Origin: Dimorphilus gyrociliatus
Lineage: Eukaryota; Animalia; Annelida
Length of the DNA stretch: 64,000 bases
Assembly: GCA_904063045.1 (NCBI GenBank)
Contig: CAJFCJ010000007.1
Span: forward strand, 3,789,404 to 3,853,403
Direction of reading: 5' to 3'
A program made the translations under genes and the position numbers. The notes under the pieces are model-generated. The model saw nothing but the letters and a program-made list of their open reading frames with translations. It was not told where the DNA came from and searched no databases. Every line of letters begins with the position of its first letter. Position 1 is the first letter of the stretch. Below are positions 31,575 through 46,543 of the stretch, in pieces.

Positions 31575-34500
31575 TTAGGAAAACTTTATTAATCGCTGTA
31601 GTCTACGAACCATCGCTGAGATAAATCCAATACGAGTTTTACTTTCAGCATACGCCTATTAAAATGGTTTGTTTTTTTAATTATTAGCGTCATTGTTTGA
31701 AGTTAATTTTTTTGTTATAGGATTTGTAAATATCTCTTACCTTTTCTACATTCATAATTTTATGGAATAATAAATCGTCTAAACATGTTTGAACATCGGA
31801 TTTCAATTGTTTTAATTGAGAACTTGACAATCTTTCAACTTCGATAGTATCTTCGAAATTTTGGAAAGAGTCAGACATAACTGAGGTTGAATCTAAAAAG
31901 ACAAATATTTTTTTATTTATATTATATTTATATAAAGAATCACTAAACATGAAGGATTTTAGAGCATTACCTTGTAGCTTTCTTATTCTTCCTTGGTTGA
32001 AAGCGGATGTGACAGTTTGTTTTGGCTGTACAGTAGCTAAATAGTAATCAAGATGTTTCCACACCACCAGTAAAGAATTTTCTATAATATTCGCCAAAAT
32101 AGCCGCTTGTTGTTCATCTATCTTTACAAGATTTTCCAGTTTGGAGGCGGCTGCTTCGTATCTTTGCTCAGCAGATACTGCAGAGTCACTTAGTTCTCTT
32201 AATTCTTCACTAGACAATTCGCTTACACGTCCACATTTTCTTTCGCTATTTCTCTTTCTGTCTAAAACTGTAAGCAATTGAGTTGTTCGCTCCTTCAGAC
32301 TTCTCACCACTAAGCCAAGTTCAGGAGCTTTCTTTCCGCTTTCGAGTAATTGACTTGTAACACTTGATCCTCCAACAGCATCCGTTAAACTTGGAGTTAA
32401 TACGATATATTCGCATGATAGTCCCCTGCAAAGAGTCATAACATTCGCAGCTATTCTCAATCTTAGGCAATCTTTTATGCAACATTTTGGGGTTTCTTTC
32501 GATGAACAAATACCAGCTAACAATAGTAAAACGAGCTGTTGAAGTCTCTTAGCGTGGTTAACGGATACGGGATTGATAGTTTCATCGATAAGTGCGTCAA
32601 CTGGAACACAGACGCATCGAGCAACAACATCTGTCACCAAACACATTTCTTTAAGTTGCTCCTCAGTTTGGGGATGAGATCTAAGAATAAATGCTATTAG
32701 ATCTGAATGAGCCAATAAAAAGTTGAGAACGTGTTGAGTGGCTAAACTGTTATTTAATCCAAGCATAGTTAATGATCCTAGACAGAGACGAAGAATTGGC
32801 ATTAGTATCCTTCTGTAGATAGCAATCGCTGTAACATTTAGCGTTCCTATATCTTCGCTATCATCTTCTTGTGGTCTAGCATCTATTAGTTCACTTTCAG
32901 CAAACTTTTCCATTATTCCAGCTTGAAGAACGCTCAATGCGCTATTGCTGTTGGTCGAGACTAATCTAATCAACAATGCCATTTGGGATTCGTATACGTA
33001 TAGCGCTTTCAATCCAAATGCTCCGACTGATTTCGGCGCGAGTAGATCAGCAAGATCGTCAACATTTATAACTTCGACAAGATGATTTACAAATCCATTT
33101 GTTGATAGGAAAGATAAGCAAACAGAGGTTCGATCCAAGATTAAAATCTCGTCTAGTATAGATAAAGCCAAGAGCTTGCATACTCTATGACCGTCACAGG
33201 CATCGGATGAAATTGTATGAAGTAAATTTTCAGCATTTTCATTGAACAACAGAATGAAATCTCTTGAAAAACTTCTCCATTGTCTATCAGCAACTTGTAC
33301 TAAATGCAAAAGTGATCCATATATGTTAGCCCGAATAATTTGCTTTGAAGTTCTTGTCTTTACAAACTTTCGTATCAAAAGAGAGGTAATATTTAAAAGA
33401 GATGGTATGAATGTATCTGATTTTGCTTCCTTAACAAATGCATGACGAATAATTGATGTAAGTACTAGGCATGTTGCCGAAACCGGACCGTTTAGTTTTG
33501 CATCACAAATCTCACTCTTTCTTAATAGTGTTTCCAGCATTTCAATAGAGGTCTCATGTCGGGTGAAACTTGACCACATTTCATCTGGACAAGAAGTCAT
33601 TAGTACCTCTACTATCTGTTGCCAAGCACTTAAAAGTGCCATTCGAGCACTTAACCACTCATGCTTATCGTTTCTTCTCTTCAAATATTTGTGAATCTCA
33701 GTTGCTTCCATAGTGGCATCAGCTTGTCGACTTTTATCCACGGTCCTGAGTAAACCATCTTGGAGTGTACTTAAATCAATTATGGATGTGTCGTCATCAA
33801 TTGTTTCGCGATTCTTTATAACTTCTTCAACGACTGTTTTATCCAAAACTCGAATGTGAGGAACATCGTCATCCAGCAGAATGTTTTCACTATTCATTTC
33901 TATTTCATCGAGAATTGCCAATAGTTTTCTCTTCTTACTGCCAACAATGGACTGATGGAAGGAGGTTTCATCAAAATTTTGAATTGTATGACGCAATAGT
34001 TCGTTAATTAACTCAGTTAAATGGGATCTATGTTCGTTGGCTGATAAGATTCTCATTTCTAGAGCAATCATTCTCATAAGCCAAGCCTCGCACTTAAGAA
34101 CTTCCTTCACGCTGTCATTTGGTTTTGGAAACGGAAGGCATTGTAATTGCCTGTTGAAGAAGTCATGGTTTAACCTCAAAAATCTTGTAGTTGGTGTACA
34201 AGTATCCATATTCGTACATAATTCATACATAAACTCATAATACATGCAAGCCAAATTTGGTCTGGTGGAAAACAAGATAGCTTCATTAGCAACTTCTTCT
34301 TCAAGTTTCATAACCAAGGAATGCAAGCATGTTCGAATTGAACCTCTAATACCAGCCTGCTCGATGTTACTCTTTGAAACGCCATTCTGAATATCAAAAT
34401 CCAATAGGAGTTGAGTTAAGTTTGGTGTTGGAGATCGTACAGTATTCAGCAACAAATTCATTAAACTACTTTGAGCAGCAGTCATCATTTCACCTTCGTC

Positions 34501-37420
34501 TTCCTCTGGTTCTTTCCATTCAATACAGGCATCTTCTTCGAGGATACGAACAAATGCACTTTGTAATTTCCTCCTATTGATATTATCAGATTGAAGATTT
34601 CGAACAAGATCAGAATGAACGTTATGATATTTGCAAAGAAGCGTCAAGACGTTAATCGCTCGTTGAGCATGTGATAACAAACTATCGCATTGAGGTATGA
34701 TTCTGCATATAACAAGCAGATAATCAGCTTTTCCAGTCTTTGGATTTACACCCAATAAAAGCTGATCTAACCTATCCATTAAAATAGATGATTGAGAATT
34801 ACGGTAACTCTGTATTACGTCATCTTGAACTCCAAGAACATATTCAATAACTTTTAATGCTTTGAGCAAAGCATCTTCGAGACAAGTAGTTTTTCTAAAT
34901 TCGTGCCTGTCCAAAATTGTGACTGCTTCGTATAGCAATTGCATAACGCTACGAAACAAGCTTGAATCTCTCAGCATATGAACAGTCAACTGAACACTAG
35001 GATGTTCATCGCTTACTTTAACTAAATCTGTTGGTTTTAAGGCAGTTAAGAACTGTCTTAAAACGTCCATTGCTTCTTCACAAATCTCCCATCTCTCGTT
35101 AGCATCAGCATATGCTCGATTATGAACATGTTGTAAGACATCCTGTCTTAAATATGTTGCATATGCTGCTAAATCACGATCATTTGGTAGTTGATGGGAA
35201 GATAGCGCACTTAACAATTTTAAGAAAGCTTTTGTTAAAGGATATTTTTCATTGCGACTTTCAGCCTGGCCCAATTCTTGTTTTATATGAGTTAATACTT
35301 GAAAATGCGATAATCCTATCCATATAACATTTGCCATATCGGGTTCAAAACACAAGCACGAAATAGTTCGAACAATCCTCGCCTTCAATGGTAATGGGAC
35401 ACTGCATCCAACTAAAGCCAGCATTACATGTACTGGAGTTGCACCTGGCCCAGAGCAATACTGTAGGAGTAATTGCGAACTCTTCGCTCCAGCAAATCTC
35501 CATAATACAGCCAATAAATCCAGTACTGCTTCTAAGCCTTCCAACTCTTGGCCTGAAATGGTTCTTGATCCAATTGGTGTTGAACGTTGTTGAAATCGTG
35601 CATCAGGTGTATGAAGTGCCCGCCAATATTGTTCAAAAGTTGCAAAGAAGTGTGAAAATGATACGCCAGACCCTCTAACAGCTGTCCCATTAGACTCAAG
35701 GAGGAAACAGGCTTGTTCAGCACAATTTGGACCTGTCGCTAAACCTGTTAGCATTTTTACATAATTTATATACATTGTTGAGGGAAGCATATCGCCAGAG
35801 AGCTTCACAAACTTCATTAAACTTTGGTGTTTGTGATGAGAACATTCCTTTTCATCCGGATCTTGAATCCAGAAATGCTTTGCTAATTCTTGCTTTAGGG
35901 GATCTTTTCCATAGATTGCTGCTAAAAGACTCATTAACTGTTCAAAATGCCTAGGTAAATCATTTGGCGGCTGAGCACCCTGAGCCAATTGGCTGGCAGC
36001 CATCCTCGCACTCTCATCTCCAACATTTCGTAGTTCTTTGATTTTCAGTGGAAATAAGGATATAGCATTCGTTAGAAGATTATGTACATGTCGAACATAG
36101 AAACCGTTGGATAGAGTGTGAAAGCGTTCATTTTCAACAACAGCTTTATGTAGAAATTCAAAGGCGTCGGCGTAGATCCCAATGTCTAGAACATTCTCGT
36201 CTTCCTCACAAATATCATGGCTTACATACTCGGACAAAGTTCTCAGAGCTACAGCCCAGGCTAACTGTATAATAGCTCGGATTTTACAATTTTCCCATTT
36301 ACTGGTCATAATTAGATTGTGAATCGTTCGTAAGTAGCTCTGGTTATCAATTGCGGGATGTTTTATTCCTTCTTCTGATGGTTTTGGATCAAGAGACGTA
36401 AGTAAAGCCATTAGAATTGTCATTTCCGTAACATCTAATTTCTGGGATTGGCATTTGAGACCTTTTAAAAAATTAATTATTACTGTTGTATCTTCCAATT
36501 CCAATGGTTGTTGAATGGCTAAACTGAATAAAATCTCGGCTAAGCATAACTTTATCGACCTAAATAAAGAAATAATTCTATGCCTATGACCAGCATCCCC
36601 AAGAGCTCTTTCTTTTTCTAATTTAGCCAACTCTTTTTCTTCATCCATCTCAGATATATTTTGAATAATTTTTCTAACAAGTCCATTGTCGATCAACTTT
36701 TGAATGTAATTAGTTACTGTAGTAGTTAGATTGGCCTCTAGACCAGGAAGGGCCCAAGTTCTTCCAGAGCGTGCGCATGCTAGTTCCTTAACACCTTTAA
36801 CCAAGCAAAATCGGCTAGTATAGTACAATTCAACAGCAACAAGGCCCCGAGGTTGCTCAGGATGATAAGAAATTTCAGATTCAGCTGCAGCGAGCAATTC
36901 AACACTTCGGGTTTCTTTTAATTTGAAAAGGTCGCTTATTATTAAAGCCTCTCGTATGAAATCTTCTGTAAAATATTGTTTAGATGGTCTTCCCTTGACT
37001 GTTAAGCCATCCGAGTGACTTTTTTCCACAGTTTGCCTTTCTATTGGATTCGGGGCTGGGTTCTCCAGTAGATTTAAAAGATCAGCATCAAGCTGATGCA
37101 GGCTAGCTTCCAGCGTTCTGAGGGCATCAAAGGATTGGCCGCGCGTAGTGATAGCATATTCAACGGTCCTTAAGAAATCTTTGTATGAAGTCCAAATCTG
37201 ATAACCTGAAATAGTATCAATCAGCGTTACCCGGCTTTCTAAATTTGCGTGAAACTCTAATATCGCTCAAAGTTGAGCAGAAAGCTTTTTTTTTATGGTT
37301 TTAAGCCTAAATTTTTCATATTACTACCATCTAACATTACAGGGAGAGATGCAAAAGAGAAAAGGGATAAATATGTATAAAAAGTGGTAATCTATAAAAC
37401 CTACCAAGATCTATCGACAT
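31575..37420 (-). CDS. NUP205: Nuclear pore complex protein Nup205, 4 coding exons
   Basis: MSIDL|GYQIWTSYKDF...; EALIISDLFKLKETRSVELLAAAE...PRGLVAVELYY; last exon AYAESKTRIGFISAMVRRLQRLIKFS*. Predicted exons 37405-37420, 31971-37205, ~31741-31892 and 31575-~31656. Confidence 0.95.
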
Positions 37421-39469: not shown

Positions 39470-41090
39470 ATGTCGAGAATTTCTCCAACATATCTAAATT
39501 CTAGTCCTCTTATTGACGATAGTAGAGGTTCGAATTTTAATAGTTTTTTCATACAAACAACCGAAATTGAAAAGAAAGTGGATAGAGCACGTTTTGATAA
39601 AGATTTTCACGAATTTATAAAAACTGTAACCGAGAGTTCATCATTTAATACTATAATTATAACAATAATAATAGTTAATTCGATTATTTTGGGTTGTGAA
39701 ACAAAAATAGAATGGAGAGACGATTATAACTATTTCTTTCAATTATTAGATGAGATTTTTACAGGTAATACGACTAAATGTGTAGGAGTTAAATGGTCTA
39801 TTTTAGGATTATATTTCTATACAGTATATTTATAAATTAATGATTAAAAGGTATCTATGCTATTGAATTTCTTCTAAAATTGTATGCAGAACCTAAAAAT
39901 TATTGGCAAAGCTATTATAATTTGTTCGATTTTGCTGTTCTCTTTATTAGCTATTTTGAAATAGTTATTGTTGGTTTTCTTGCTCATAAAACTACTGTAA
40001 ACATTGAAGGTTTAAAGATACTTAGAGCCTTTAGAACTTTAAGAACTTTACGAACAGTATCTTTCATCAAAGGACTTCAAGTACTAGTAAGAGCTTTGGT
40101 AGATACTATTAAAAGATGGTTAATTAATATTATACTGTTACTACTTTTGTTAATGTATATTTTTGGCATAATGGGCTATTACTTATTCGGTACTGGCGAG
40201 GGTTCTGATAAGGAACATTGGGGTTCGATATCAAAGGCGATGATGTCGCTATTCACATACGTTAGCGTTGATGGTTGGACAGATATTCAAGAATCAATGG
40301 ATAAGAAGGGATATAAATTTAGCAGACTCTTTACAATCTCTTTTATATTTATAGGTAATTTTATTTTTACTAATGTCTTTATTGGCGTCATTATAATGAG
40401 CATCAATCAATCTACTGAGGTATACAAGGTAATAATAATAATCATGATAATAAAAATAGAGTTGTCGCCATGTATATTATAACTGCAACATATGTAGTAT
40501 ATGTATATATTTGTGATTCTTTTGTACTTTTCTACTTAGAAAAAACAATTAACTGAAAGAAAGGCTATTGTACAACATAGGAAACAAGAGCTGATGCATA
40601 GGCAATTTAGAAAATATCAGCAAATTCTTGAAAGAAAAAAAAAGGGAAAATTTAAAAATGTTGAAGAGTTTATTGAAAATTTTGGTCGTACTCTTTCACA
40701 CAACGCATCTGTATTCACTGCTGATAAATGCGGCAATAAATTATGGCTTGAGATATTCCTTGTAAGTTTAGGTCTATTGGACGATACCATGCACGGCCTG
40801 CAGCAATTGTACTTTGAGATGGCGTCAGTGCTCTCTTCAGAATACGAGAATAGACTAAGAAGGGGATTGAAAGTTGAAAATGTAAAAGTTAGGCCTAATT
40901 GCGAAAGATCAGGAGTAGTTTGTTTCTTTTTACTTTATTGCTTTTTTCCTAATTACATAGTTATATATTTGTGCTATGTTTATAGGAACAAAATGAAGAG
41001 GTTAGGCTAAAAAAAATAATTAAAGCCTATGATTTTCATGAAACTAAAAGGCTGCATACAAACACAAAATCGATATCGAAAGAAGATTAA
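39470..41090 (+). CDS. CATSPER3: Cation channel sperm-associated protein 3-like (6-TM), 3-4 exons; 3' end is 41010 if the last predicted intron is not used
   Basis: LYAEPKNYWQSYYNLFDF; LLLLLMYIFGIMGYYLFG…HWGSI; pore FTYVSVDGWTDIQ; FSRLFTISFI; C-terminal coiled coil ENFGRTLSH…DDTMHGLQQLYFEMASVL. These parallel remembered CatSper3 motifs (TVDGWTDLQ, ENFKKTLSH, QELYYEIVHVL). Confidence 0.85.
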
Positions 41091-41547: not shown

Positions 41548-44500
41548 TCAACTTGGATTAGGATTCTATAATAAGTCAGGGAAAAGAGTAACAAAGTAAG
41601 CATTAAGAGCTTTTGACCATATTTTTTTATATTACTCACCTGACTAAATACTCCTTTACCAAAGTAATCTGCAACGACTGTAAAACCGTCTTTAGCTCTT
41701 TCGAGCTGAAAAGGTAAAAAAAAGCATTAGTCATTAGTAATCTTTTACACAACGTATTTATATGATATTTTATGTATATTTATGTATTCAATTTATTTAT
41801 TTATATGAGAGAAGAAAGAGTAATGTGTACCTCTTGCTTAAATTTATTATACAAGTCTTTTCCATCTCTTTCTTGAGCAGCCAACATTTGAAGAAATTTT
41901 CTGAAATTAATTAACAGATGTGACTTTAAAACAAGTTATGAAAAAAAGTAATAGCTAACTGATTATCTGCTAAGCAAACTGGACATTCGTTTCCCTCATT
42001 CGAACCCGCGTAACTTTCAAAGCAGTGCTCATGAAAAGAATGCTGGCATAAGAAGTGGACGGTTGGCAAATCTAATGGATGACTACATGCACTACATTTC
42101 TCAGATTGAAATATTCTAGCCGAAGTTGATAAACTTTCAATATCGCCTCTCATTTTTGCCGTTTCTTCTCCGTATTGTTTAATTAGTCTCTCATCCTCGT
42201 TAATCTCCTCTTTTTCTTTTTGCAATCTTTTCACAATATAATCTTTTACGACCGACAGTGTAGCATTAGAATTATGAGCTAAAGTCTGGATAACCAATAA
42301 TGGGGGCAATAGATTATGAATATCGATGTGAGCTAAGACTTCTTTCATATGCATGCGACAGCTATCCTCTTCTCCTTTTGCTAAGAAAGCTAGTGCCTGG
42401 ACCCAAACACCTGGATCTTCCTTTCTATTTAAAGAGAAATTAATAAATTATAGAATCGTTTCTACTGCTTCTGTTCTAAATAAGTACCCAAATTTTTTAC
42501 AAGTATCAATAATCTGAGAATATTCTTTATTTTCCATATGATGTCTGACCACCTGTTGATAGCTGTACGAATATTAATAAATTAATTTATTTAATTATTG
42601 CGTTTATGAAAATCAACAAAAGATAATTACAATCCAGCCTTTTCGTAAAGAAAGAGTATTCCGGCCTTAAAATTGTTCATTTGGCAAAGAACCAAAGCAT
42701 GATGTATATCATATTTCGACTATTTTGGAAAAGTATATTAATTAGCTACTCCATTGATAACTAATATGTACAGGTAAGATAAAGAAAAGAGAGACAAGAA
42801 TAAAAATAGATGTAATCTTACATTTTCACAATGCAATAGCTCCAATATCTTCCGTTCCTTATCAATTTTCGCCTATTTTATGACATTTATTAGTTGACTT
42901 TTTGTTCTATATATAGTAATTGAAAACAAACCCCTAGATCATTTTCATGAACGTATTCTTGCAATCTCAATTCTAACAGTGTCCCATAAACTAATGAAGA
43001 ACACGCTTGCACATTTATCTAATGCAAAAATAAATAGGCAAAAAATGCATTATTTATTTAGTTATATATGAATTTTAATTGATAAAACAAAAATTCCTAT
43101 CCTTACCATATGCTGTAAGAAATCAATTAAGCGGCCGGCATCGTCCACAAATATGTGAATAAATTCATCTGGTAGGGCCTTTACTATACCAGTAACTTCT
43201 AGACCTCTCTCATCTTTTATCAGCGGTTCATCAATTGGCTTATAGTCAGTACATAGCCTTTTTAAAAGCGTAGTGGTTTGCTCTGGAACATTTTTTAAGA
43301 GGATTTTGCCATAATCTTTCATTGTTGTTAAAGCGTCGTCAAATTGCAGCCTTCCCAAATAATCTAAAGCACTTTTATAATCTTTTACATCTTCTAACAA
43401 AGTTTTTAAATAGAGGTTATGGCGTTTATGGCGAAGAGCAATTTTTAAAGCGTGTTTAAAGTAACCAGCTTGTCTACAGACTTTTATAGCTGTTTCCACA
43501 TCAAAATTATCATCGTGTTCCTATTTTCAATGAATTAATTTAATGAAGATATTAATTAAAAAAAATAATTGAAATAACGTACTTCTATGAATTTATCTAA
43601 ACCGGAATGGTCTGGTAAACGAGTATAACAGTTAAGTAATAGCGTTGTATGATCATTATTAGCTAATTTTCTAGCGTGTAGTTCCTCAATATAGGCAGTG
43701 AGATTATGTATTCTTGATGAATCTAGGAACTATATGTATACATCTTAATATATATCAGTCTATACATTATATACATACTTAATATATTAAGTATTATATT
43801 ATGTATGTACATAGTATATTATAGATACATATACTTTATTTATAATCTATCAAAAACGTTTCTTTACCTTTCGAATTACGTACGAAGCTTCCAATCTACC
43901 AATAGTTTTCAAGTATTGATTCATTGCATTGTCATAGTCTCCTTGTCTTAAGATTAGAATTAATTAATAATCTATTATTTATATTAATAAATATATGTAC
44001 CGATATAAGTTATCTCCATATTGCCTATATATATCAACTATTCCATCGTGATCATAATTTTGATTCTCTGCTATCCTGTAAAAGAAAAATAGAAAAAGTT
44101 TAATTAACTAAATATAATAAGTAGTATTAGTAAATCTAAGAATATATCATAATCTATATTAAAGTCCATAGAGGATATATTAGAGTAGAGTACATAATAA
44201 AAATCTATATTTACTGTATGGCCAGCTCGTAACGAGTTTTTCTAAATAGTATATCTAGCTTTGTTTGAGTGTCTTTCTCCTCAATTTGGTTTATCTATAA
44301 CAAAATGAGAAAATTGTTAATAGAAAATATTCTTCTTTCTTCATATCCTTAGTGCAAAACGTTTTAGATAAAAATTTTGAGTAGGATTACCTTGTTATCT
44401 ATACCGCAAAATGCGTATAGGGAACCCCATTCGGCCACTAAACCAGAAACTTTTGGTAGAGGGAACGTAAACGCTATTAACTTATTCTCTATATCGTAAA

Positions 44501-46543
44501 TCGATATTGTACTCATGTCACTGCCCTTGGACGACCTATATATTTCAGCAATTAAATAATTGCCTTTAATTATTCATATTAAAAATTAGTGAAAGAAAAC
44601 ATACGCTGCCTCAGAAACTATAACTATATAATTTCTAAATGAATAAATCAGTTGTTTGTTAGCCTGTACGGCAATACATGGTCCTCTTTCTTTCGTTTCG
44701 TAGAAGTAAAGTGCCTCAGGTCTAGCTACGACTAATCTGGGTGCATTGCCTTCGGTGTAATGTAGAGTCATACATTTTGGCTGACATGAAAAACGAAAAT
44801 TTATCATATGATATATCGAAAATATAGGTTAATATATCTTACAGCACATCCTTGTTGATCAAGAATAACTGGCACATCACATTTTTCTTTTATTCCAATT
44901 GCAATAGATATCACGTGATATTCGGTTGTAACAAACAGTACTGCATCGTTTTGAGTATTACAAAACTCTAAACCAGTGATAGCATGAACATCTTCGTAAA
45001 TCGTACGTTGTTTGGAATGTCGTTCTCTAGTTACATCTCCCCTGTATAATAGAATTTGTCCAGTTTCAAAACCAAAAGCCATATAAGATAGACTGTCATG
45101 AACAGCCAAACATGTCACCTGTTGAAAATATAATATCTTAATATTTATAACTAAGTAGGGATAAATTTTTAGCAGACCTTCTTGACTTGTTGATCTAATA
45201 GTAAGGGAAAGCTTCTGCAAACGAACCTATTACGGTCTTTATCGAGCTTATCTAAATCCCATACTTTAACAATCGGCACTCTATCTTCCTCTTCATCTTC
45301 CTATGAACAAAATAGAAGATACGCTCTTACAATTTGTTTTTTTTTCTAACAGTTTTTATTACCCCGATAGAAACAAGGATGCTATATTTCTTCAAATGGA
45401 ATAAGTGAGAAACAGTACGATTGTAGGCCTTTACTGATGAAATTTCCAATGATCTTGTAATGAAGTGTATACTCCCTCGATCACCTCCAACTATTATTTG
45501 ACTTCTTCCACTGGTGCATGCAGTAACGTTTTCTTCCTGTCAAAAATGAGGGAAGCAATGAATTTAAAATTGCTTGAAAAGCAAAAATCTTGACGATTTC
45601 TTGGGAAAGGATCTTCTATTTCCTCTTAGAAGCCAGAAGTATTACTCTTATCAGCAGGGAAACCTTCTTAATTCTTTTATTTGACTAATTAATTATCTAC
45701 AGTTATTTGTGTAGAGTTTACAAAACTTTGCATTTTCTTTACAAAGAAACTCTAGGTGGAGGAGAATGGATTCAAAATATACAAAGACAAAATTGTACCT
45801 TTAAGGAATCAAAGGGCCTGCTGTCTGTAGTTTTAGCGACTTCACAATCGAAGAAAGAGAATACAGACCACTGAAAAAAACCAAATTAAATTAGGGCAGG
45901 TAAAATTATCCATTTCCTGTCATTTAAGTGAACCTTTATCGTTTCTAAGAAAGTAAATTAACGTAAAATCTCCAATGAATTCTCATGATTTTATTACAAA
46001 TTTAATTATTAGTTCCGTTTTTGGTACTGATTAGCACTATCTTTGAAAATTCTGAATGCGTTTAGCAGCTTTCTCAAAGCAACTTTAAAAGGGGTTCTGT
46101 ACTATTTGATAGAGTCATTATACCGGAGATCTTTCGCATAAAATTCTATTTATTTATTTATTAAGGAAAATCATGTTCCACAAATAATTGCATTATTAGT
46201 TTTTTTCATGTTTTAGTTAAAATTTATAAGGTACATCTCACTGATCAAAATGACTTCGTATAATTTAAGGCGGAAACATTAGAATAATAATCTTTAGCTT
46301 AATTTACAATTTATCTTAAACTTATATTTAAGGGAAAACTAGCATCCTAGAAGGGGAGTAACGCAGTATCCCCTTTTATCACTCAAATATATATATTGTT
46401 CTTGTATCGATTTAAAGGAATTTTTCCATTTTATTAACATTTACACAAAGTAAATAGAATTCTTTTTAAAATATCAGAAATACTTTTAATTAACATGTAA
46501 TCAGACAAAATTTTATAAGGATACATACTTGAAGAAAAGCCAT
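41548..46543 (-). CDS. VPS11: Vacuolar protein sorting 11 (CORVET/HOPS), many small exons
   Basis: MAFLQ|WSVFSFFD; KQYLKTIGRLEASYVIRK|FLDSSRIHNLTAYIEELH; PPLLVIQTLAHNS; RING KCSACSHPLDLPTVHFLCQHSFHEHCF…ECPVC; FTVVADYFGKGVF. Confidence 0.95.

Follow-up and report, generated by a model that had tools for sequence, protein, structure and literature searches.

The closest described system is the CatSper channel of mammalian sperm. According to the structure of the mouse CatSpermasome and to physiological work in mammals, sea urchins and ascidians, four different 6-TM subunits, CatSper1 to CatSper4, combine into one calcium-selective pore, with each subunit giving one Asp of a DDDD filter, and beta, gamma and delta/epsilon build an extracellular canopy. 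A further partner, zeta, is specific to mammals. In these animals the channel sits in the sperm flagellum and opens on depolarisation and intracellular alkalinisation, and the Ca2+ that enters sets the flagellar beat. Where we speak below of a DDDD pore, a flagellar site, gating or a role of Ca2+ in an annelid, we do so by analogy with these animals.

That protostomes lack CatSper is the view of 2008. Romero and Nishigaki reported in 2019 that CatSper is found in Brachiopoda and in some arthropods and not in Mollusca, with annelids unmentioned in the text (PMC6660944), and a CatSper3 of the barnacle Amphibalanus has been named by NCBI. For annelids, a 2026 paper tabulates a CatSper1 of Lamellibrachia satsuma (PMC13674862), and the GO term "CatSper complex" was found to be enriched among male-biased genes in Platynereis (PMC11195272). 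Our literature search found no paper on the annelid CatSper complement as such. A preliminary description of the locus studied here, made from the DNA sequence, had expected a retained and possibly undescribed CatSper system if the host was a spiralian or annelid. This holds for the annelid complement, of which we found no account, but not for protostome CatSper as a whole, which is already on record for brachiopods, arthropods and annelids.

Dwarf males of the annelid Dimorphilus gyrociliatus inseminate females before hatching. They measure 50 micrometres and consist of a few hundred cells, and the genome is represented by a haploid assembly of about 78 Mb in about 350 scaffolds with a strong GC bias; the genome paper makes no mention of CatSper (PMC7854359). 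We analysed a stretch of 64,000 nucleotides from this assembly (contig CAJFCJ010000007.1, positions 3789404-3853403; hereafter the window), in which positions 39470-41090 (+) hold a CatSper3 gene of four exons with GT-AG introns, comprising 1311 nt and 436 codons closed by a single terminal stop. The open reading frames 39470-39835, 39880-40482 and 40594-41010 (+) are joined through three canonical GT-AG introns of 86, 120 and 104 nt, and an in-frame stop lies two codons 5' of the ATG.

Exon 1 (39470-39764) contains the start codon, the cytoplasmic N-terminus, S1 (39641-39697) and the beginning of S2, and it ends at a GT donor at 39765. Intron 1 (39765-39850, 86 nt, phase 1) is followed by exon 2 (39851-40419), which carries S2 to S6 and thereby the voltage sensor and the pore. 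Intron 2 (40420-40539, 120 nt) and intron 3 (40882-40985, 104 nt) enclose exon 3 (40540-40881), which encodes the C-terminal domain, and a probable exon 4 (40986-41090) adds a variable tail and the stop codon, its frame being open up to this single stop. AT content is higher in the introns than in the exons, with a GC content of 0.22 in intron 1 compared to 0.27-0.35 in the exons. The splice junctions are predictions from sequence and conservation, and exon 4 is the least certain part of the model, as it is only weakly conserved in a close relative (43% over 28 amino acids). All searches, alignments and structure predictions with the model were carried out exon by exon.

Exon 2 matches Pfam Ion_trans with an E-value of 3.4e-35, which corresponds to the fold of a single-repeat 6-TM voltage-gated-like channel, and hydropathy places S1 in exon 1 and S3, S5 and S6 in exon 2. 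The S4 voltage-sensor helix (40015-40059, +) shows five basic residues, K-R-R-R-R, at every third position, a pattern that is also present in CatSper3 proteins from other phyla. The selectivity filter SVDGW is encoded exactly at 40264-40278 (+); it fits the motif [T/S]xDxW, contributes one Asp, and reads SADGW in the close relative. The first filter residue (40264-40266) is Ser in the window and in the relative, in contrast to T[V/A]DGW in all ten of the other named CatSper3 proteins that were compared.

Against all PDB chains, exon 3 gave a single match, to residues 284-382 of mouse CatSper3 (E = 1.4e-7). It also aligns with the CatSper3 C-termini of a coral, a sponge, the barnacle and protists, six positions (K, Q, L, W, F and E) being the same in all of them, and AlphaFold2 predicted it to be all-helical, with helices at residues 2-34, 41-51 and 67-107 and a mean pLDDT of 71. 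We conclude from the alignment and the helical prediction that a CatSper3-type helical C-terminal domain is present; these helices may form a coiled coil, as the preliminary description put it. Its other observations on the protein, an intact 6-TM channel gene with a single-Asp filter SVDGW and a C-terminus of the CatSper3 type, agree with the open four-exon frame, the Ion_trans match, the hydropathy profile and the exon 3 match described here.

Compared with mammalian CatSper3 (mouse, 7EEB chain C; human, 9UBW chain C), the D. gyrociliatus protein shares the single 6-TM repeat, the xxDGW filter, the charged S4 and the homologous helical C-terminal domain, and it is likewise accompanied by CatSper1, CatSper2, CatSper4, beta, gamma and delta/epsilon. 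The lengths are similar, with 436 codons in our model and 395 residues in the mouse protein. The two differ in the first filter position, which is Ser instead of Thr in D. gyrociliatus, and in the last ~35 residues of the model, which form an unrelated tail. Over S2-S6, identity to the CatSper3 proteins of Antedon, Amphibalanus, Montipora, Oscarella and Chara is 47-58%, and to that of Thecamonas 43%. The S4 pattern, the DGWT pore core and an alignable C-terminal domain are common to these invertebrate and protist proteins, whereas their filters read T[V/A]DGW in all six genera and S[V/A]DGW is confined to the window and its close relative.

The window exon was compared exhaustively by HMMER with 1.84 billion cluster representatives, which gave 7457 matches. 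We looked up 30 of the top single-repeat clusters, among which all 16 named ones were CatSper3 or had CatSper3 proteins among their members, the remainder being unnamed protist or metagenome proteins. The named CatSper3 clusters included Antedon, Oscarella, Montipora, Amphibalanus, Chara, Thecamonas, Oopsacas and JGI records. In a maximum likelihood tree, the window exon paired with the relative assembled from Logan data (support 100/99), and this pair fell within a bilaterian CatSper3 group together with a crinoid and the barnacle (96/93). The bilaterian group in turn lay inside the CatSper3 clade (92/99), which was separate from the CatSper4 clade (99/99); the tree contained no reference CatSper1 or CatSper2, and paralogues of these two types were classed by their best PDB match only.

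The relative was recovered from four Logan assemblies (SRR23372216, SRR23372228, SRR23372229 and SRR23372231), in which its exon 2 has 83% amino acid identity to that of the window. One Logan contig of 15.8 kb keeps the gene order of the window, NUP205 (-), CatSper3 (+) and VPS11 (-). All four CatSper3 exons were found in the relative, with identities of 65, 83, 74.5 and 43% for exons 1 to 4. Nei-Gojobori estimates between the two gave dN/dS values of 0.056 (exon 2) and 0.10 (exon 3) at synonymous sites near saturation (pS 0.68, pN 0.11), and neither frame is interrupted by a stop. Therefore, CatSper3 is under purifying selection in both lineages.

Partner subunits were searched in the same genome, which encodes four alpha-subunit genes, CatSper1 to CatSper4, each with an Asp-type filter. 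CatSper4 (C20:~1.172 Mb) reached 142.7 bits to mouse CatSper4, with its C-terminal region included, and a word search with a piece of it retrieved CatSper4-like proteins of Lytechinus at 41-42% identity. CatSper2 (C1:~118-119 kb) likewise reached 142.7 bits, here to human CatSper2, and has a TLDQW pore. CatSper1 (C19:~1.2254-1.2269 Mb, -) has a TLDDW pore. It was not singled out by single-protein searches with pieces of CatSper3, CatSper2 and CatSper4 and surfaced only when a three-sequence profile was combined with a scan for the pore motif. Its S1-S3 exon scored 56.9 bits to human and 55.4 bits to mouse CatSper1, with the next match at 36.8, and CatSper1 also ranked first for the pore exon. 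The CatSper1 N-terminus that precedes S1 (C19:~1226.3-1226.9 kb, -) has about 100 residues with very few His. Short, His-poor CatSper1 N-termini have been reported for cold-fertilising invertebrates (PMC13674862), and D. gyrociliatus CatSper1 fits this description.

The auxiliary subunits beta, gamma and delta/epsilon were detected by their C-terminal domains alone. For CatSper beta (C14:946.8-947.6 kb), two exons passed the cut-off of PF15149, and CatSper gamma (C9:2168.8-2169.3 kb) matched PF22846 with 83.9 bits. PF22850 was over the cut-off at two delta/epsilon loci (C2:1687748-1688350 and C19:2151365-2152026). The models for the beta-propellers of delta and gamma and for the Ig-like domain of gamma (PF15020, PF15064 and PF22851) had no exon-level match in the genome. 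Since delta is regarded as a subunit that was added later, in vertebrates, the second delta/epsilon copy may be a lineage-specific duplicate. Additionally, an NHE-domain match at C6:2720433-2721569 (+) and a weak cNMP-binding match that lies 1.65 kb further downstream on that strand together span C6:2720433-2723496, with no voltage-sensor match between the two. This locus may represent the sperm Na+/H+ exchanger SLC9C1, and we treat it as a candidate and a lead only.

A four-repeat channel, three repeats of which carry SLEGW, SKDGW and TGDNW as pore motifs, is also encoded at C19:2778504-2787586 (-). It fits the EEDD of Cav3 T-type channels and was the strongest match to the CatSper profile outside CatSper.

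We considered whether the window gene could be some other single-repeat voltage-gated-like channel, either BacNav-like or a split Cav or Nav repeat. Cav3 repeats and the bacterial channels NavAb and NaChBac share the voltage-gated-like fold and the P-loop architecture with it, and in the search of exon 2 against PDB the Cav3 entries, at about 156 bits, even scored above CatSper3. These Cav3 totals are, however, sums over four repeats, of which the best single one reached 50.6 bits, as compared to single-domain scores of 136.5 bits for human and 135.2 bits for mouse CatSper3. Bacterial Nav channels did not exceed 76 bits, both groups are without the CatSper3 C-terminal domain, and Cav3 is a four-repeat EEDD channel that D. 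gyrociliatus encodes separately (C19:2778-2787 kb). By per-domain PDB scores, named clusters and the tree, the exon is nearer to CatSper3 than to CatSper1, CatSper2, CatSper4, Cav, Nav or BacNav, and a channel from outside CatSper is extremely improbable. We are highly confident that the gene is an intact CatSper3 orthologue of D. gyrociliatus, one of four CatSper pore subunits, as the preliminary description had named it. An orthologue could still be the orphan relic of a complex that was otherwise lost, decaying or idle. Partial CatSper sets do exist, with two alpha subunits in a butterfly and fragments in birds. In D. gyrociliatus, however, the reading frame is unbroken, and the comparison with a relative whose synonymous sites are nearly saturated gives a dN/dS of 0.06-0.10. 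The genome also encodes CatSper1, CatSper2, CatSper4, beta, gamma and two delta/epsilon subunits. A relic is hardly credible against this evidence, and the retained CatSper system that had been suspected if the host were an annelid is borne out.

A true CatSper3 orthologue might also be used in motile somatic cilia, such as those of the ciliary bands or the protonephridia, instead of or in addition to sperm. Unicellular flagellates and Chara have CatSper3 orthologues too, so that the ancestral role would have been flagellar and not strictly a sperm function. The complex is, however, sperm-restricted in the animals studied so far (PMC2572835, PMC6660944), and it is among male-biased genes that the "CatSper complex" term is enriched in the annelid Platynereis (PMC11195272). 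We regard a use in somatic cilia as unlikely, albeit less so than a relic or a channel of another family. As a sperm channel, D. gyrociliatus CatSper3 would assemble with its partners into a complex, would be expressed in sperm, and would be gated and calcium-selective in the way described for the animals named above.

We see in this gene an ordinary representative of a known family; annelid CatSper is on record but has received little discussion. As the genome also encodes the remaining pore subunits and the principal auxiliary ones, we regard the annotation as sound and the system as a known one, and no new mechanism is revealed. Further, we lean towards the view that this annelid keeps a complete and selectively maintained complex, consisting of CatSper1 to CatSper4, beta, gamma, two delta/epsilon subunits and probably the exchanger, with a lineage-specific replacement of Thr by Ser in the CatSper3 filter. 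If true, a full CatSper system would here be described explicitly for the first time in a spiralian annelid, in a very compact genome that is suited to genetics. The older picture of protostomes without CatSper is corrected by this gene. The genes of the whole core complex have been kept in D. gyrociliatus, whose male is extremely reduced and whose genome measures 78 Mb, and CatSper3 is under purifying selection. This makes it possible to use annelids to compare the conservation of sperm Ca2+ signalling between external and internal fertilisers.

The two genes that flank CatSper3 were also inspected. NUP205 (31690-37029, -) consists of one uninterrupted open reading frame of 1779 codons with a Pfam Nup192 match of 480 bits. 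It is 92% identical to its counterpart in the Logan relative and only about 31% identical to that of any other animal, the best named matches being Lingula, a bivalve, amphioxus and a nemertean, all at about 31%. A NUP205 tree placed the lineage beside the arthropods on a branch of 1.7 substitutions and with a warning for compositional bias; we read this position as a long-branch artefact of a very long and compositionally odd branch. NUP205 taken by itself shows that the host is a bilaterian and that it falls outside those deuterostome clades that were sampled, and the placement among annelids comes from the identity of the organism and not from this sequence. On the other side, VPS11 (41926-45220, -) is convergent with CatSper3 and was recognised by its RING, clathrin-repeat and N-terminal propeller exons.
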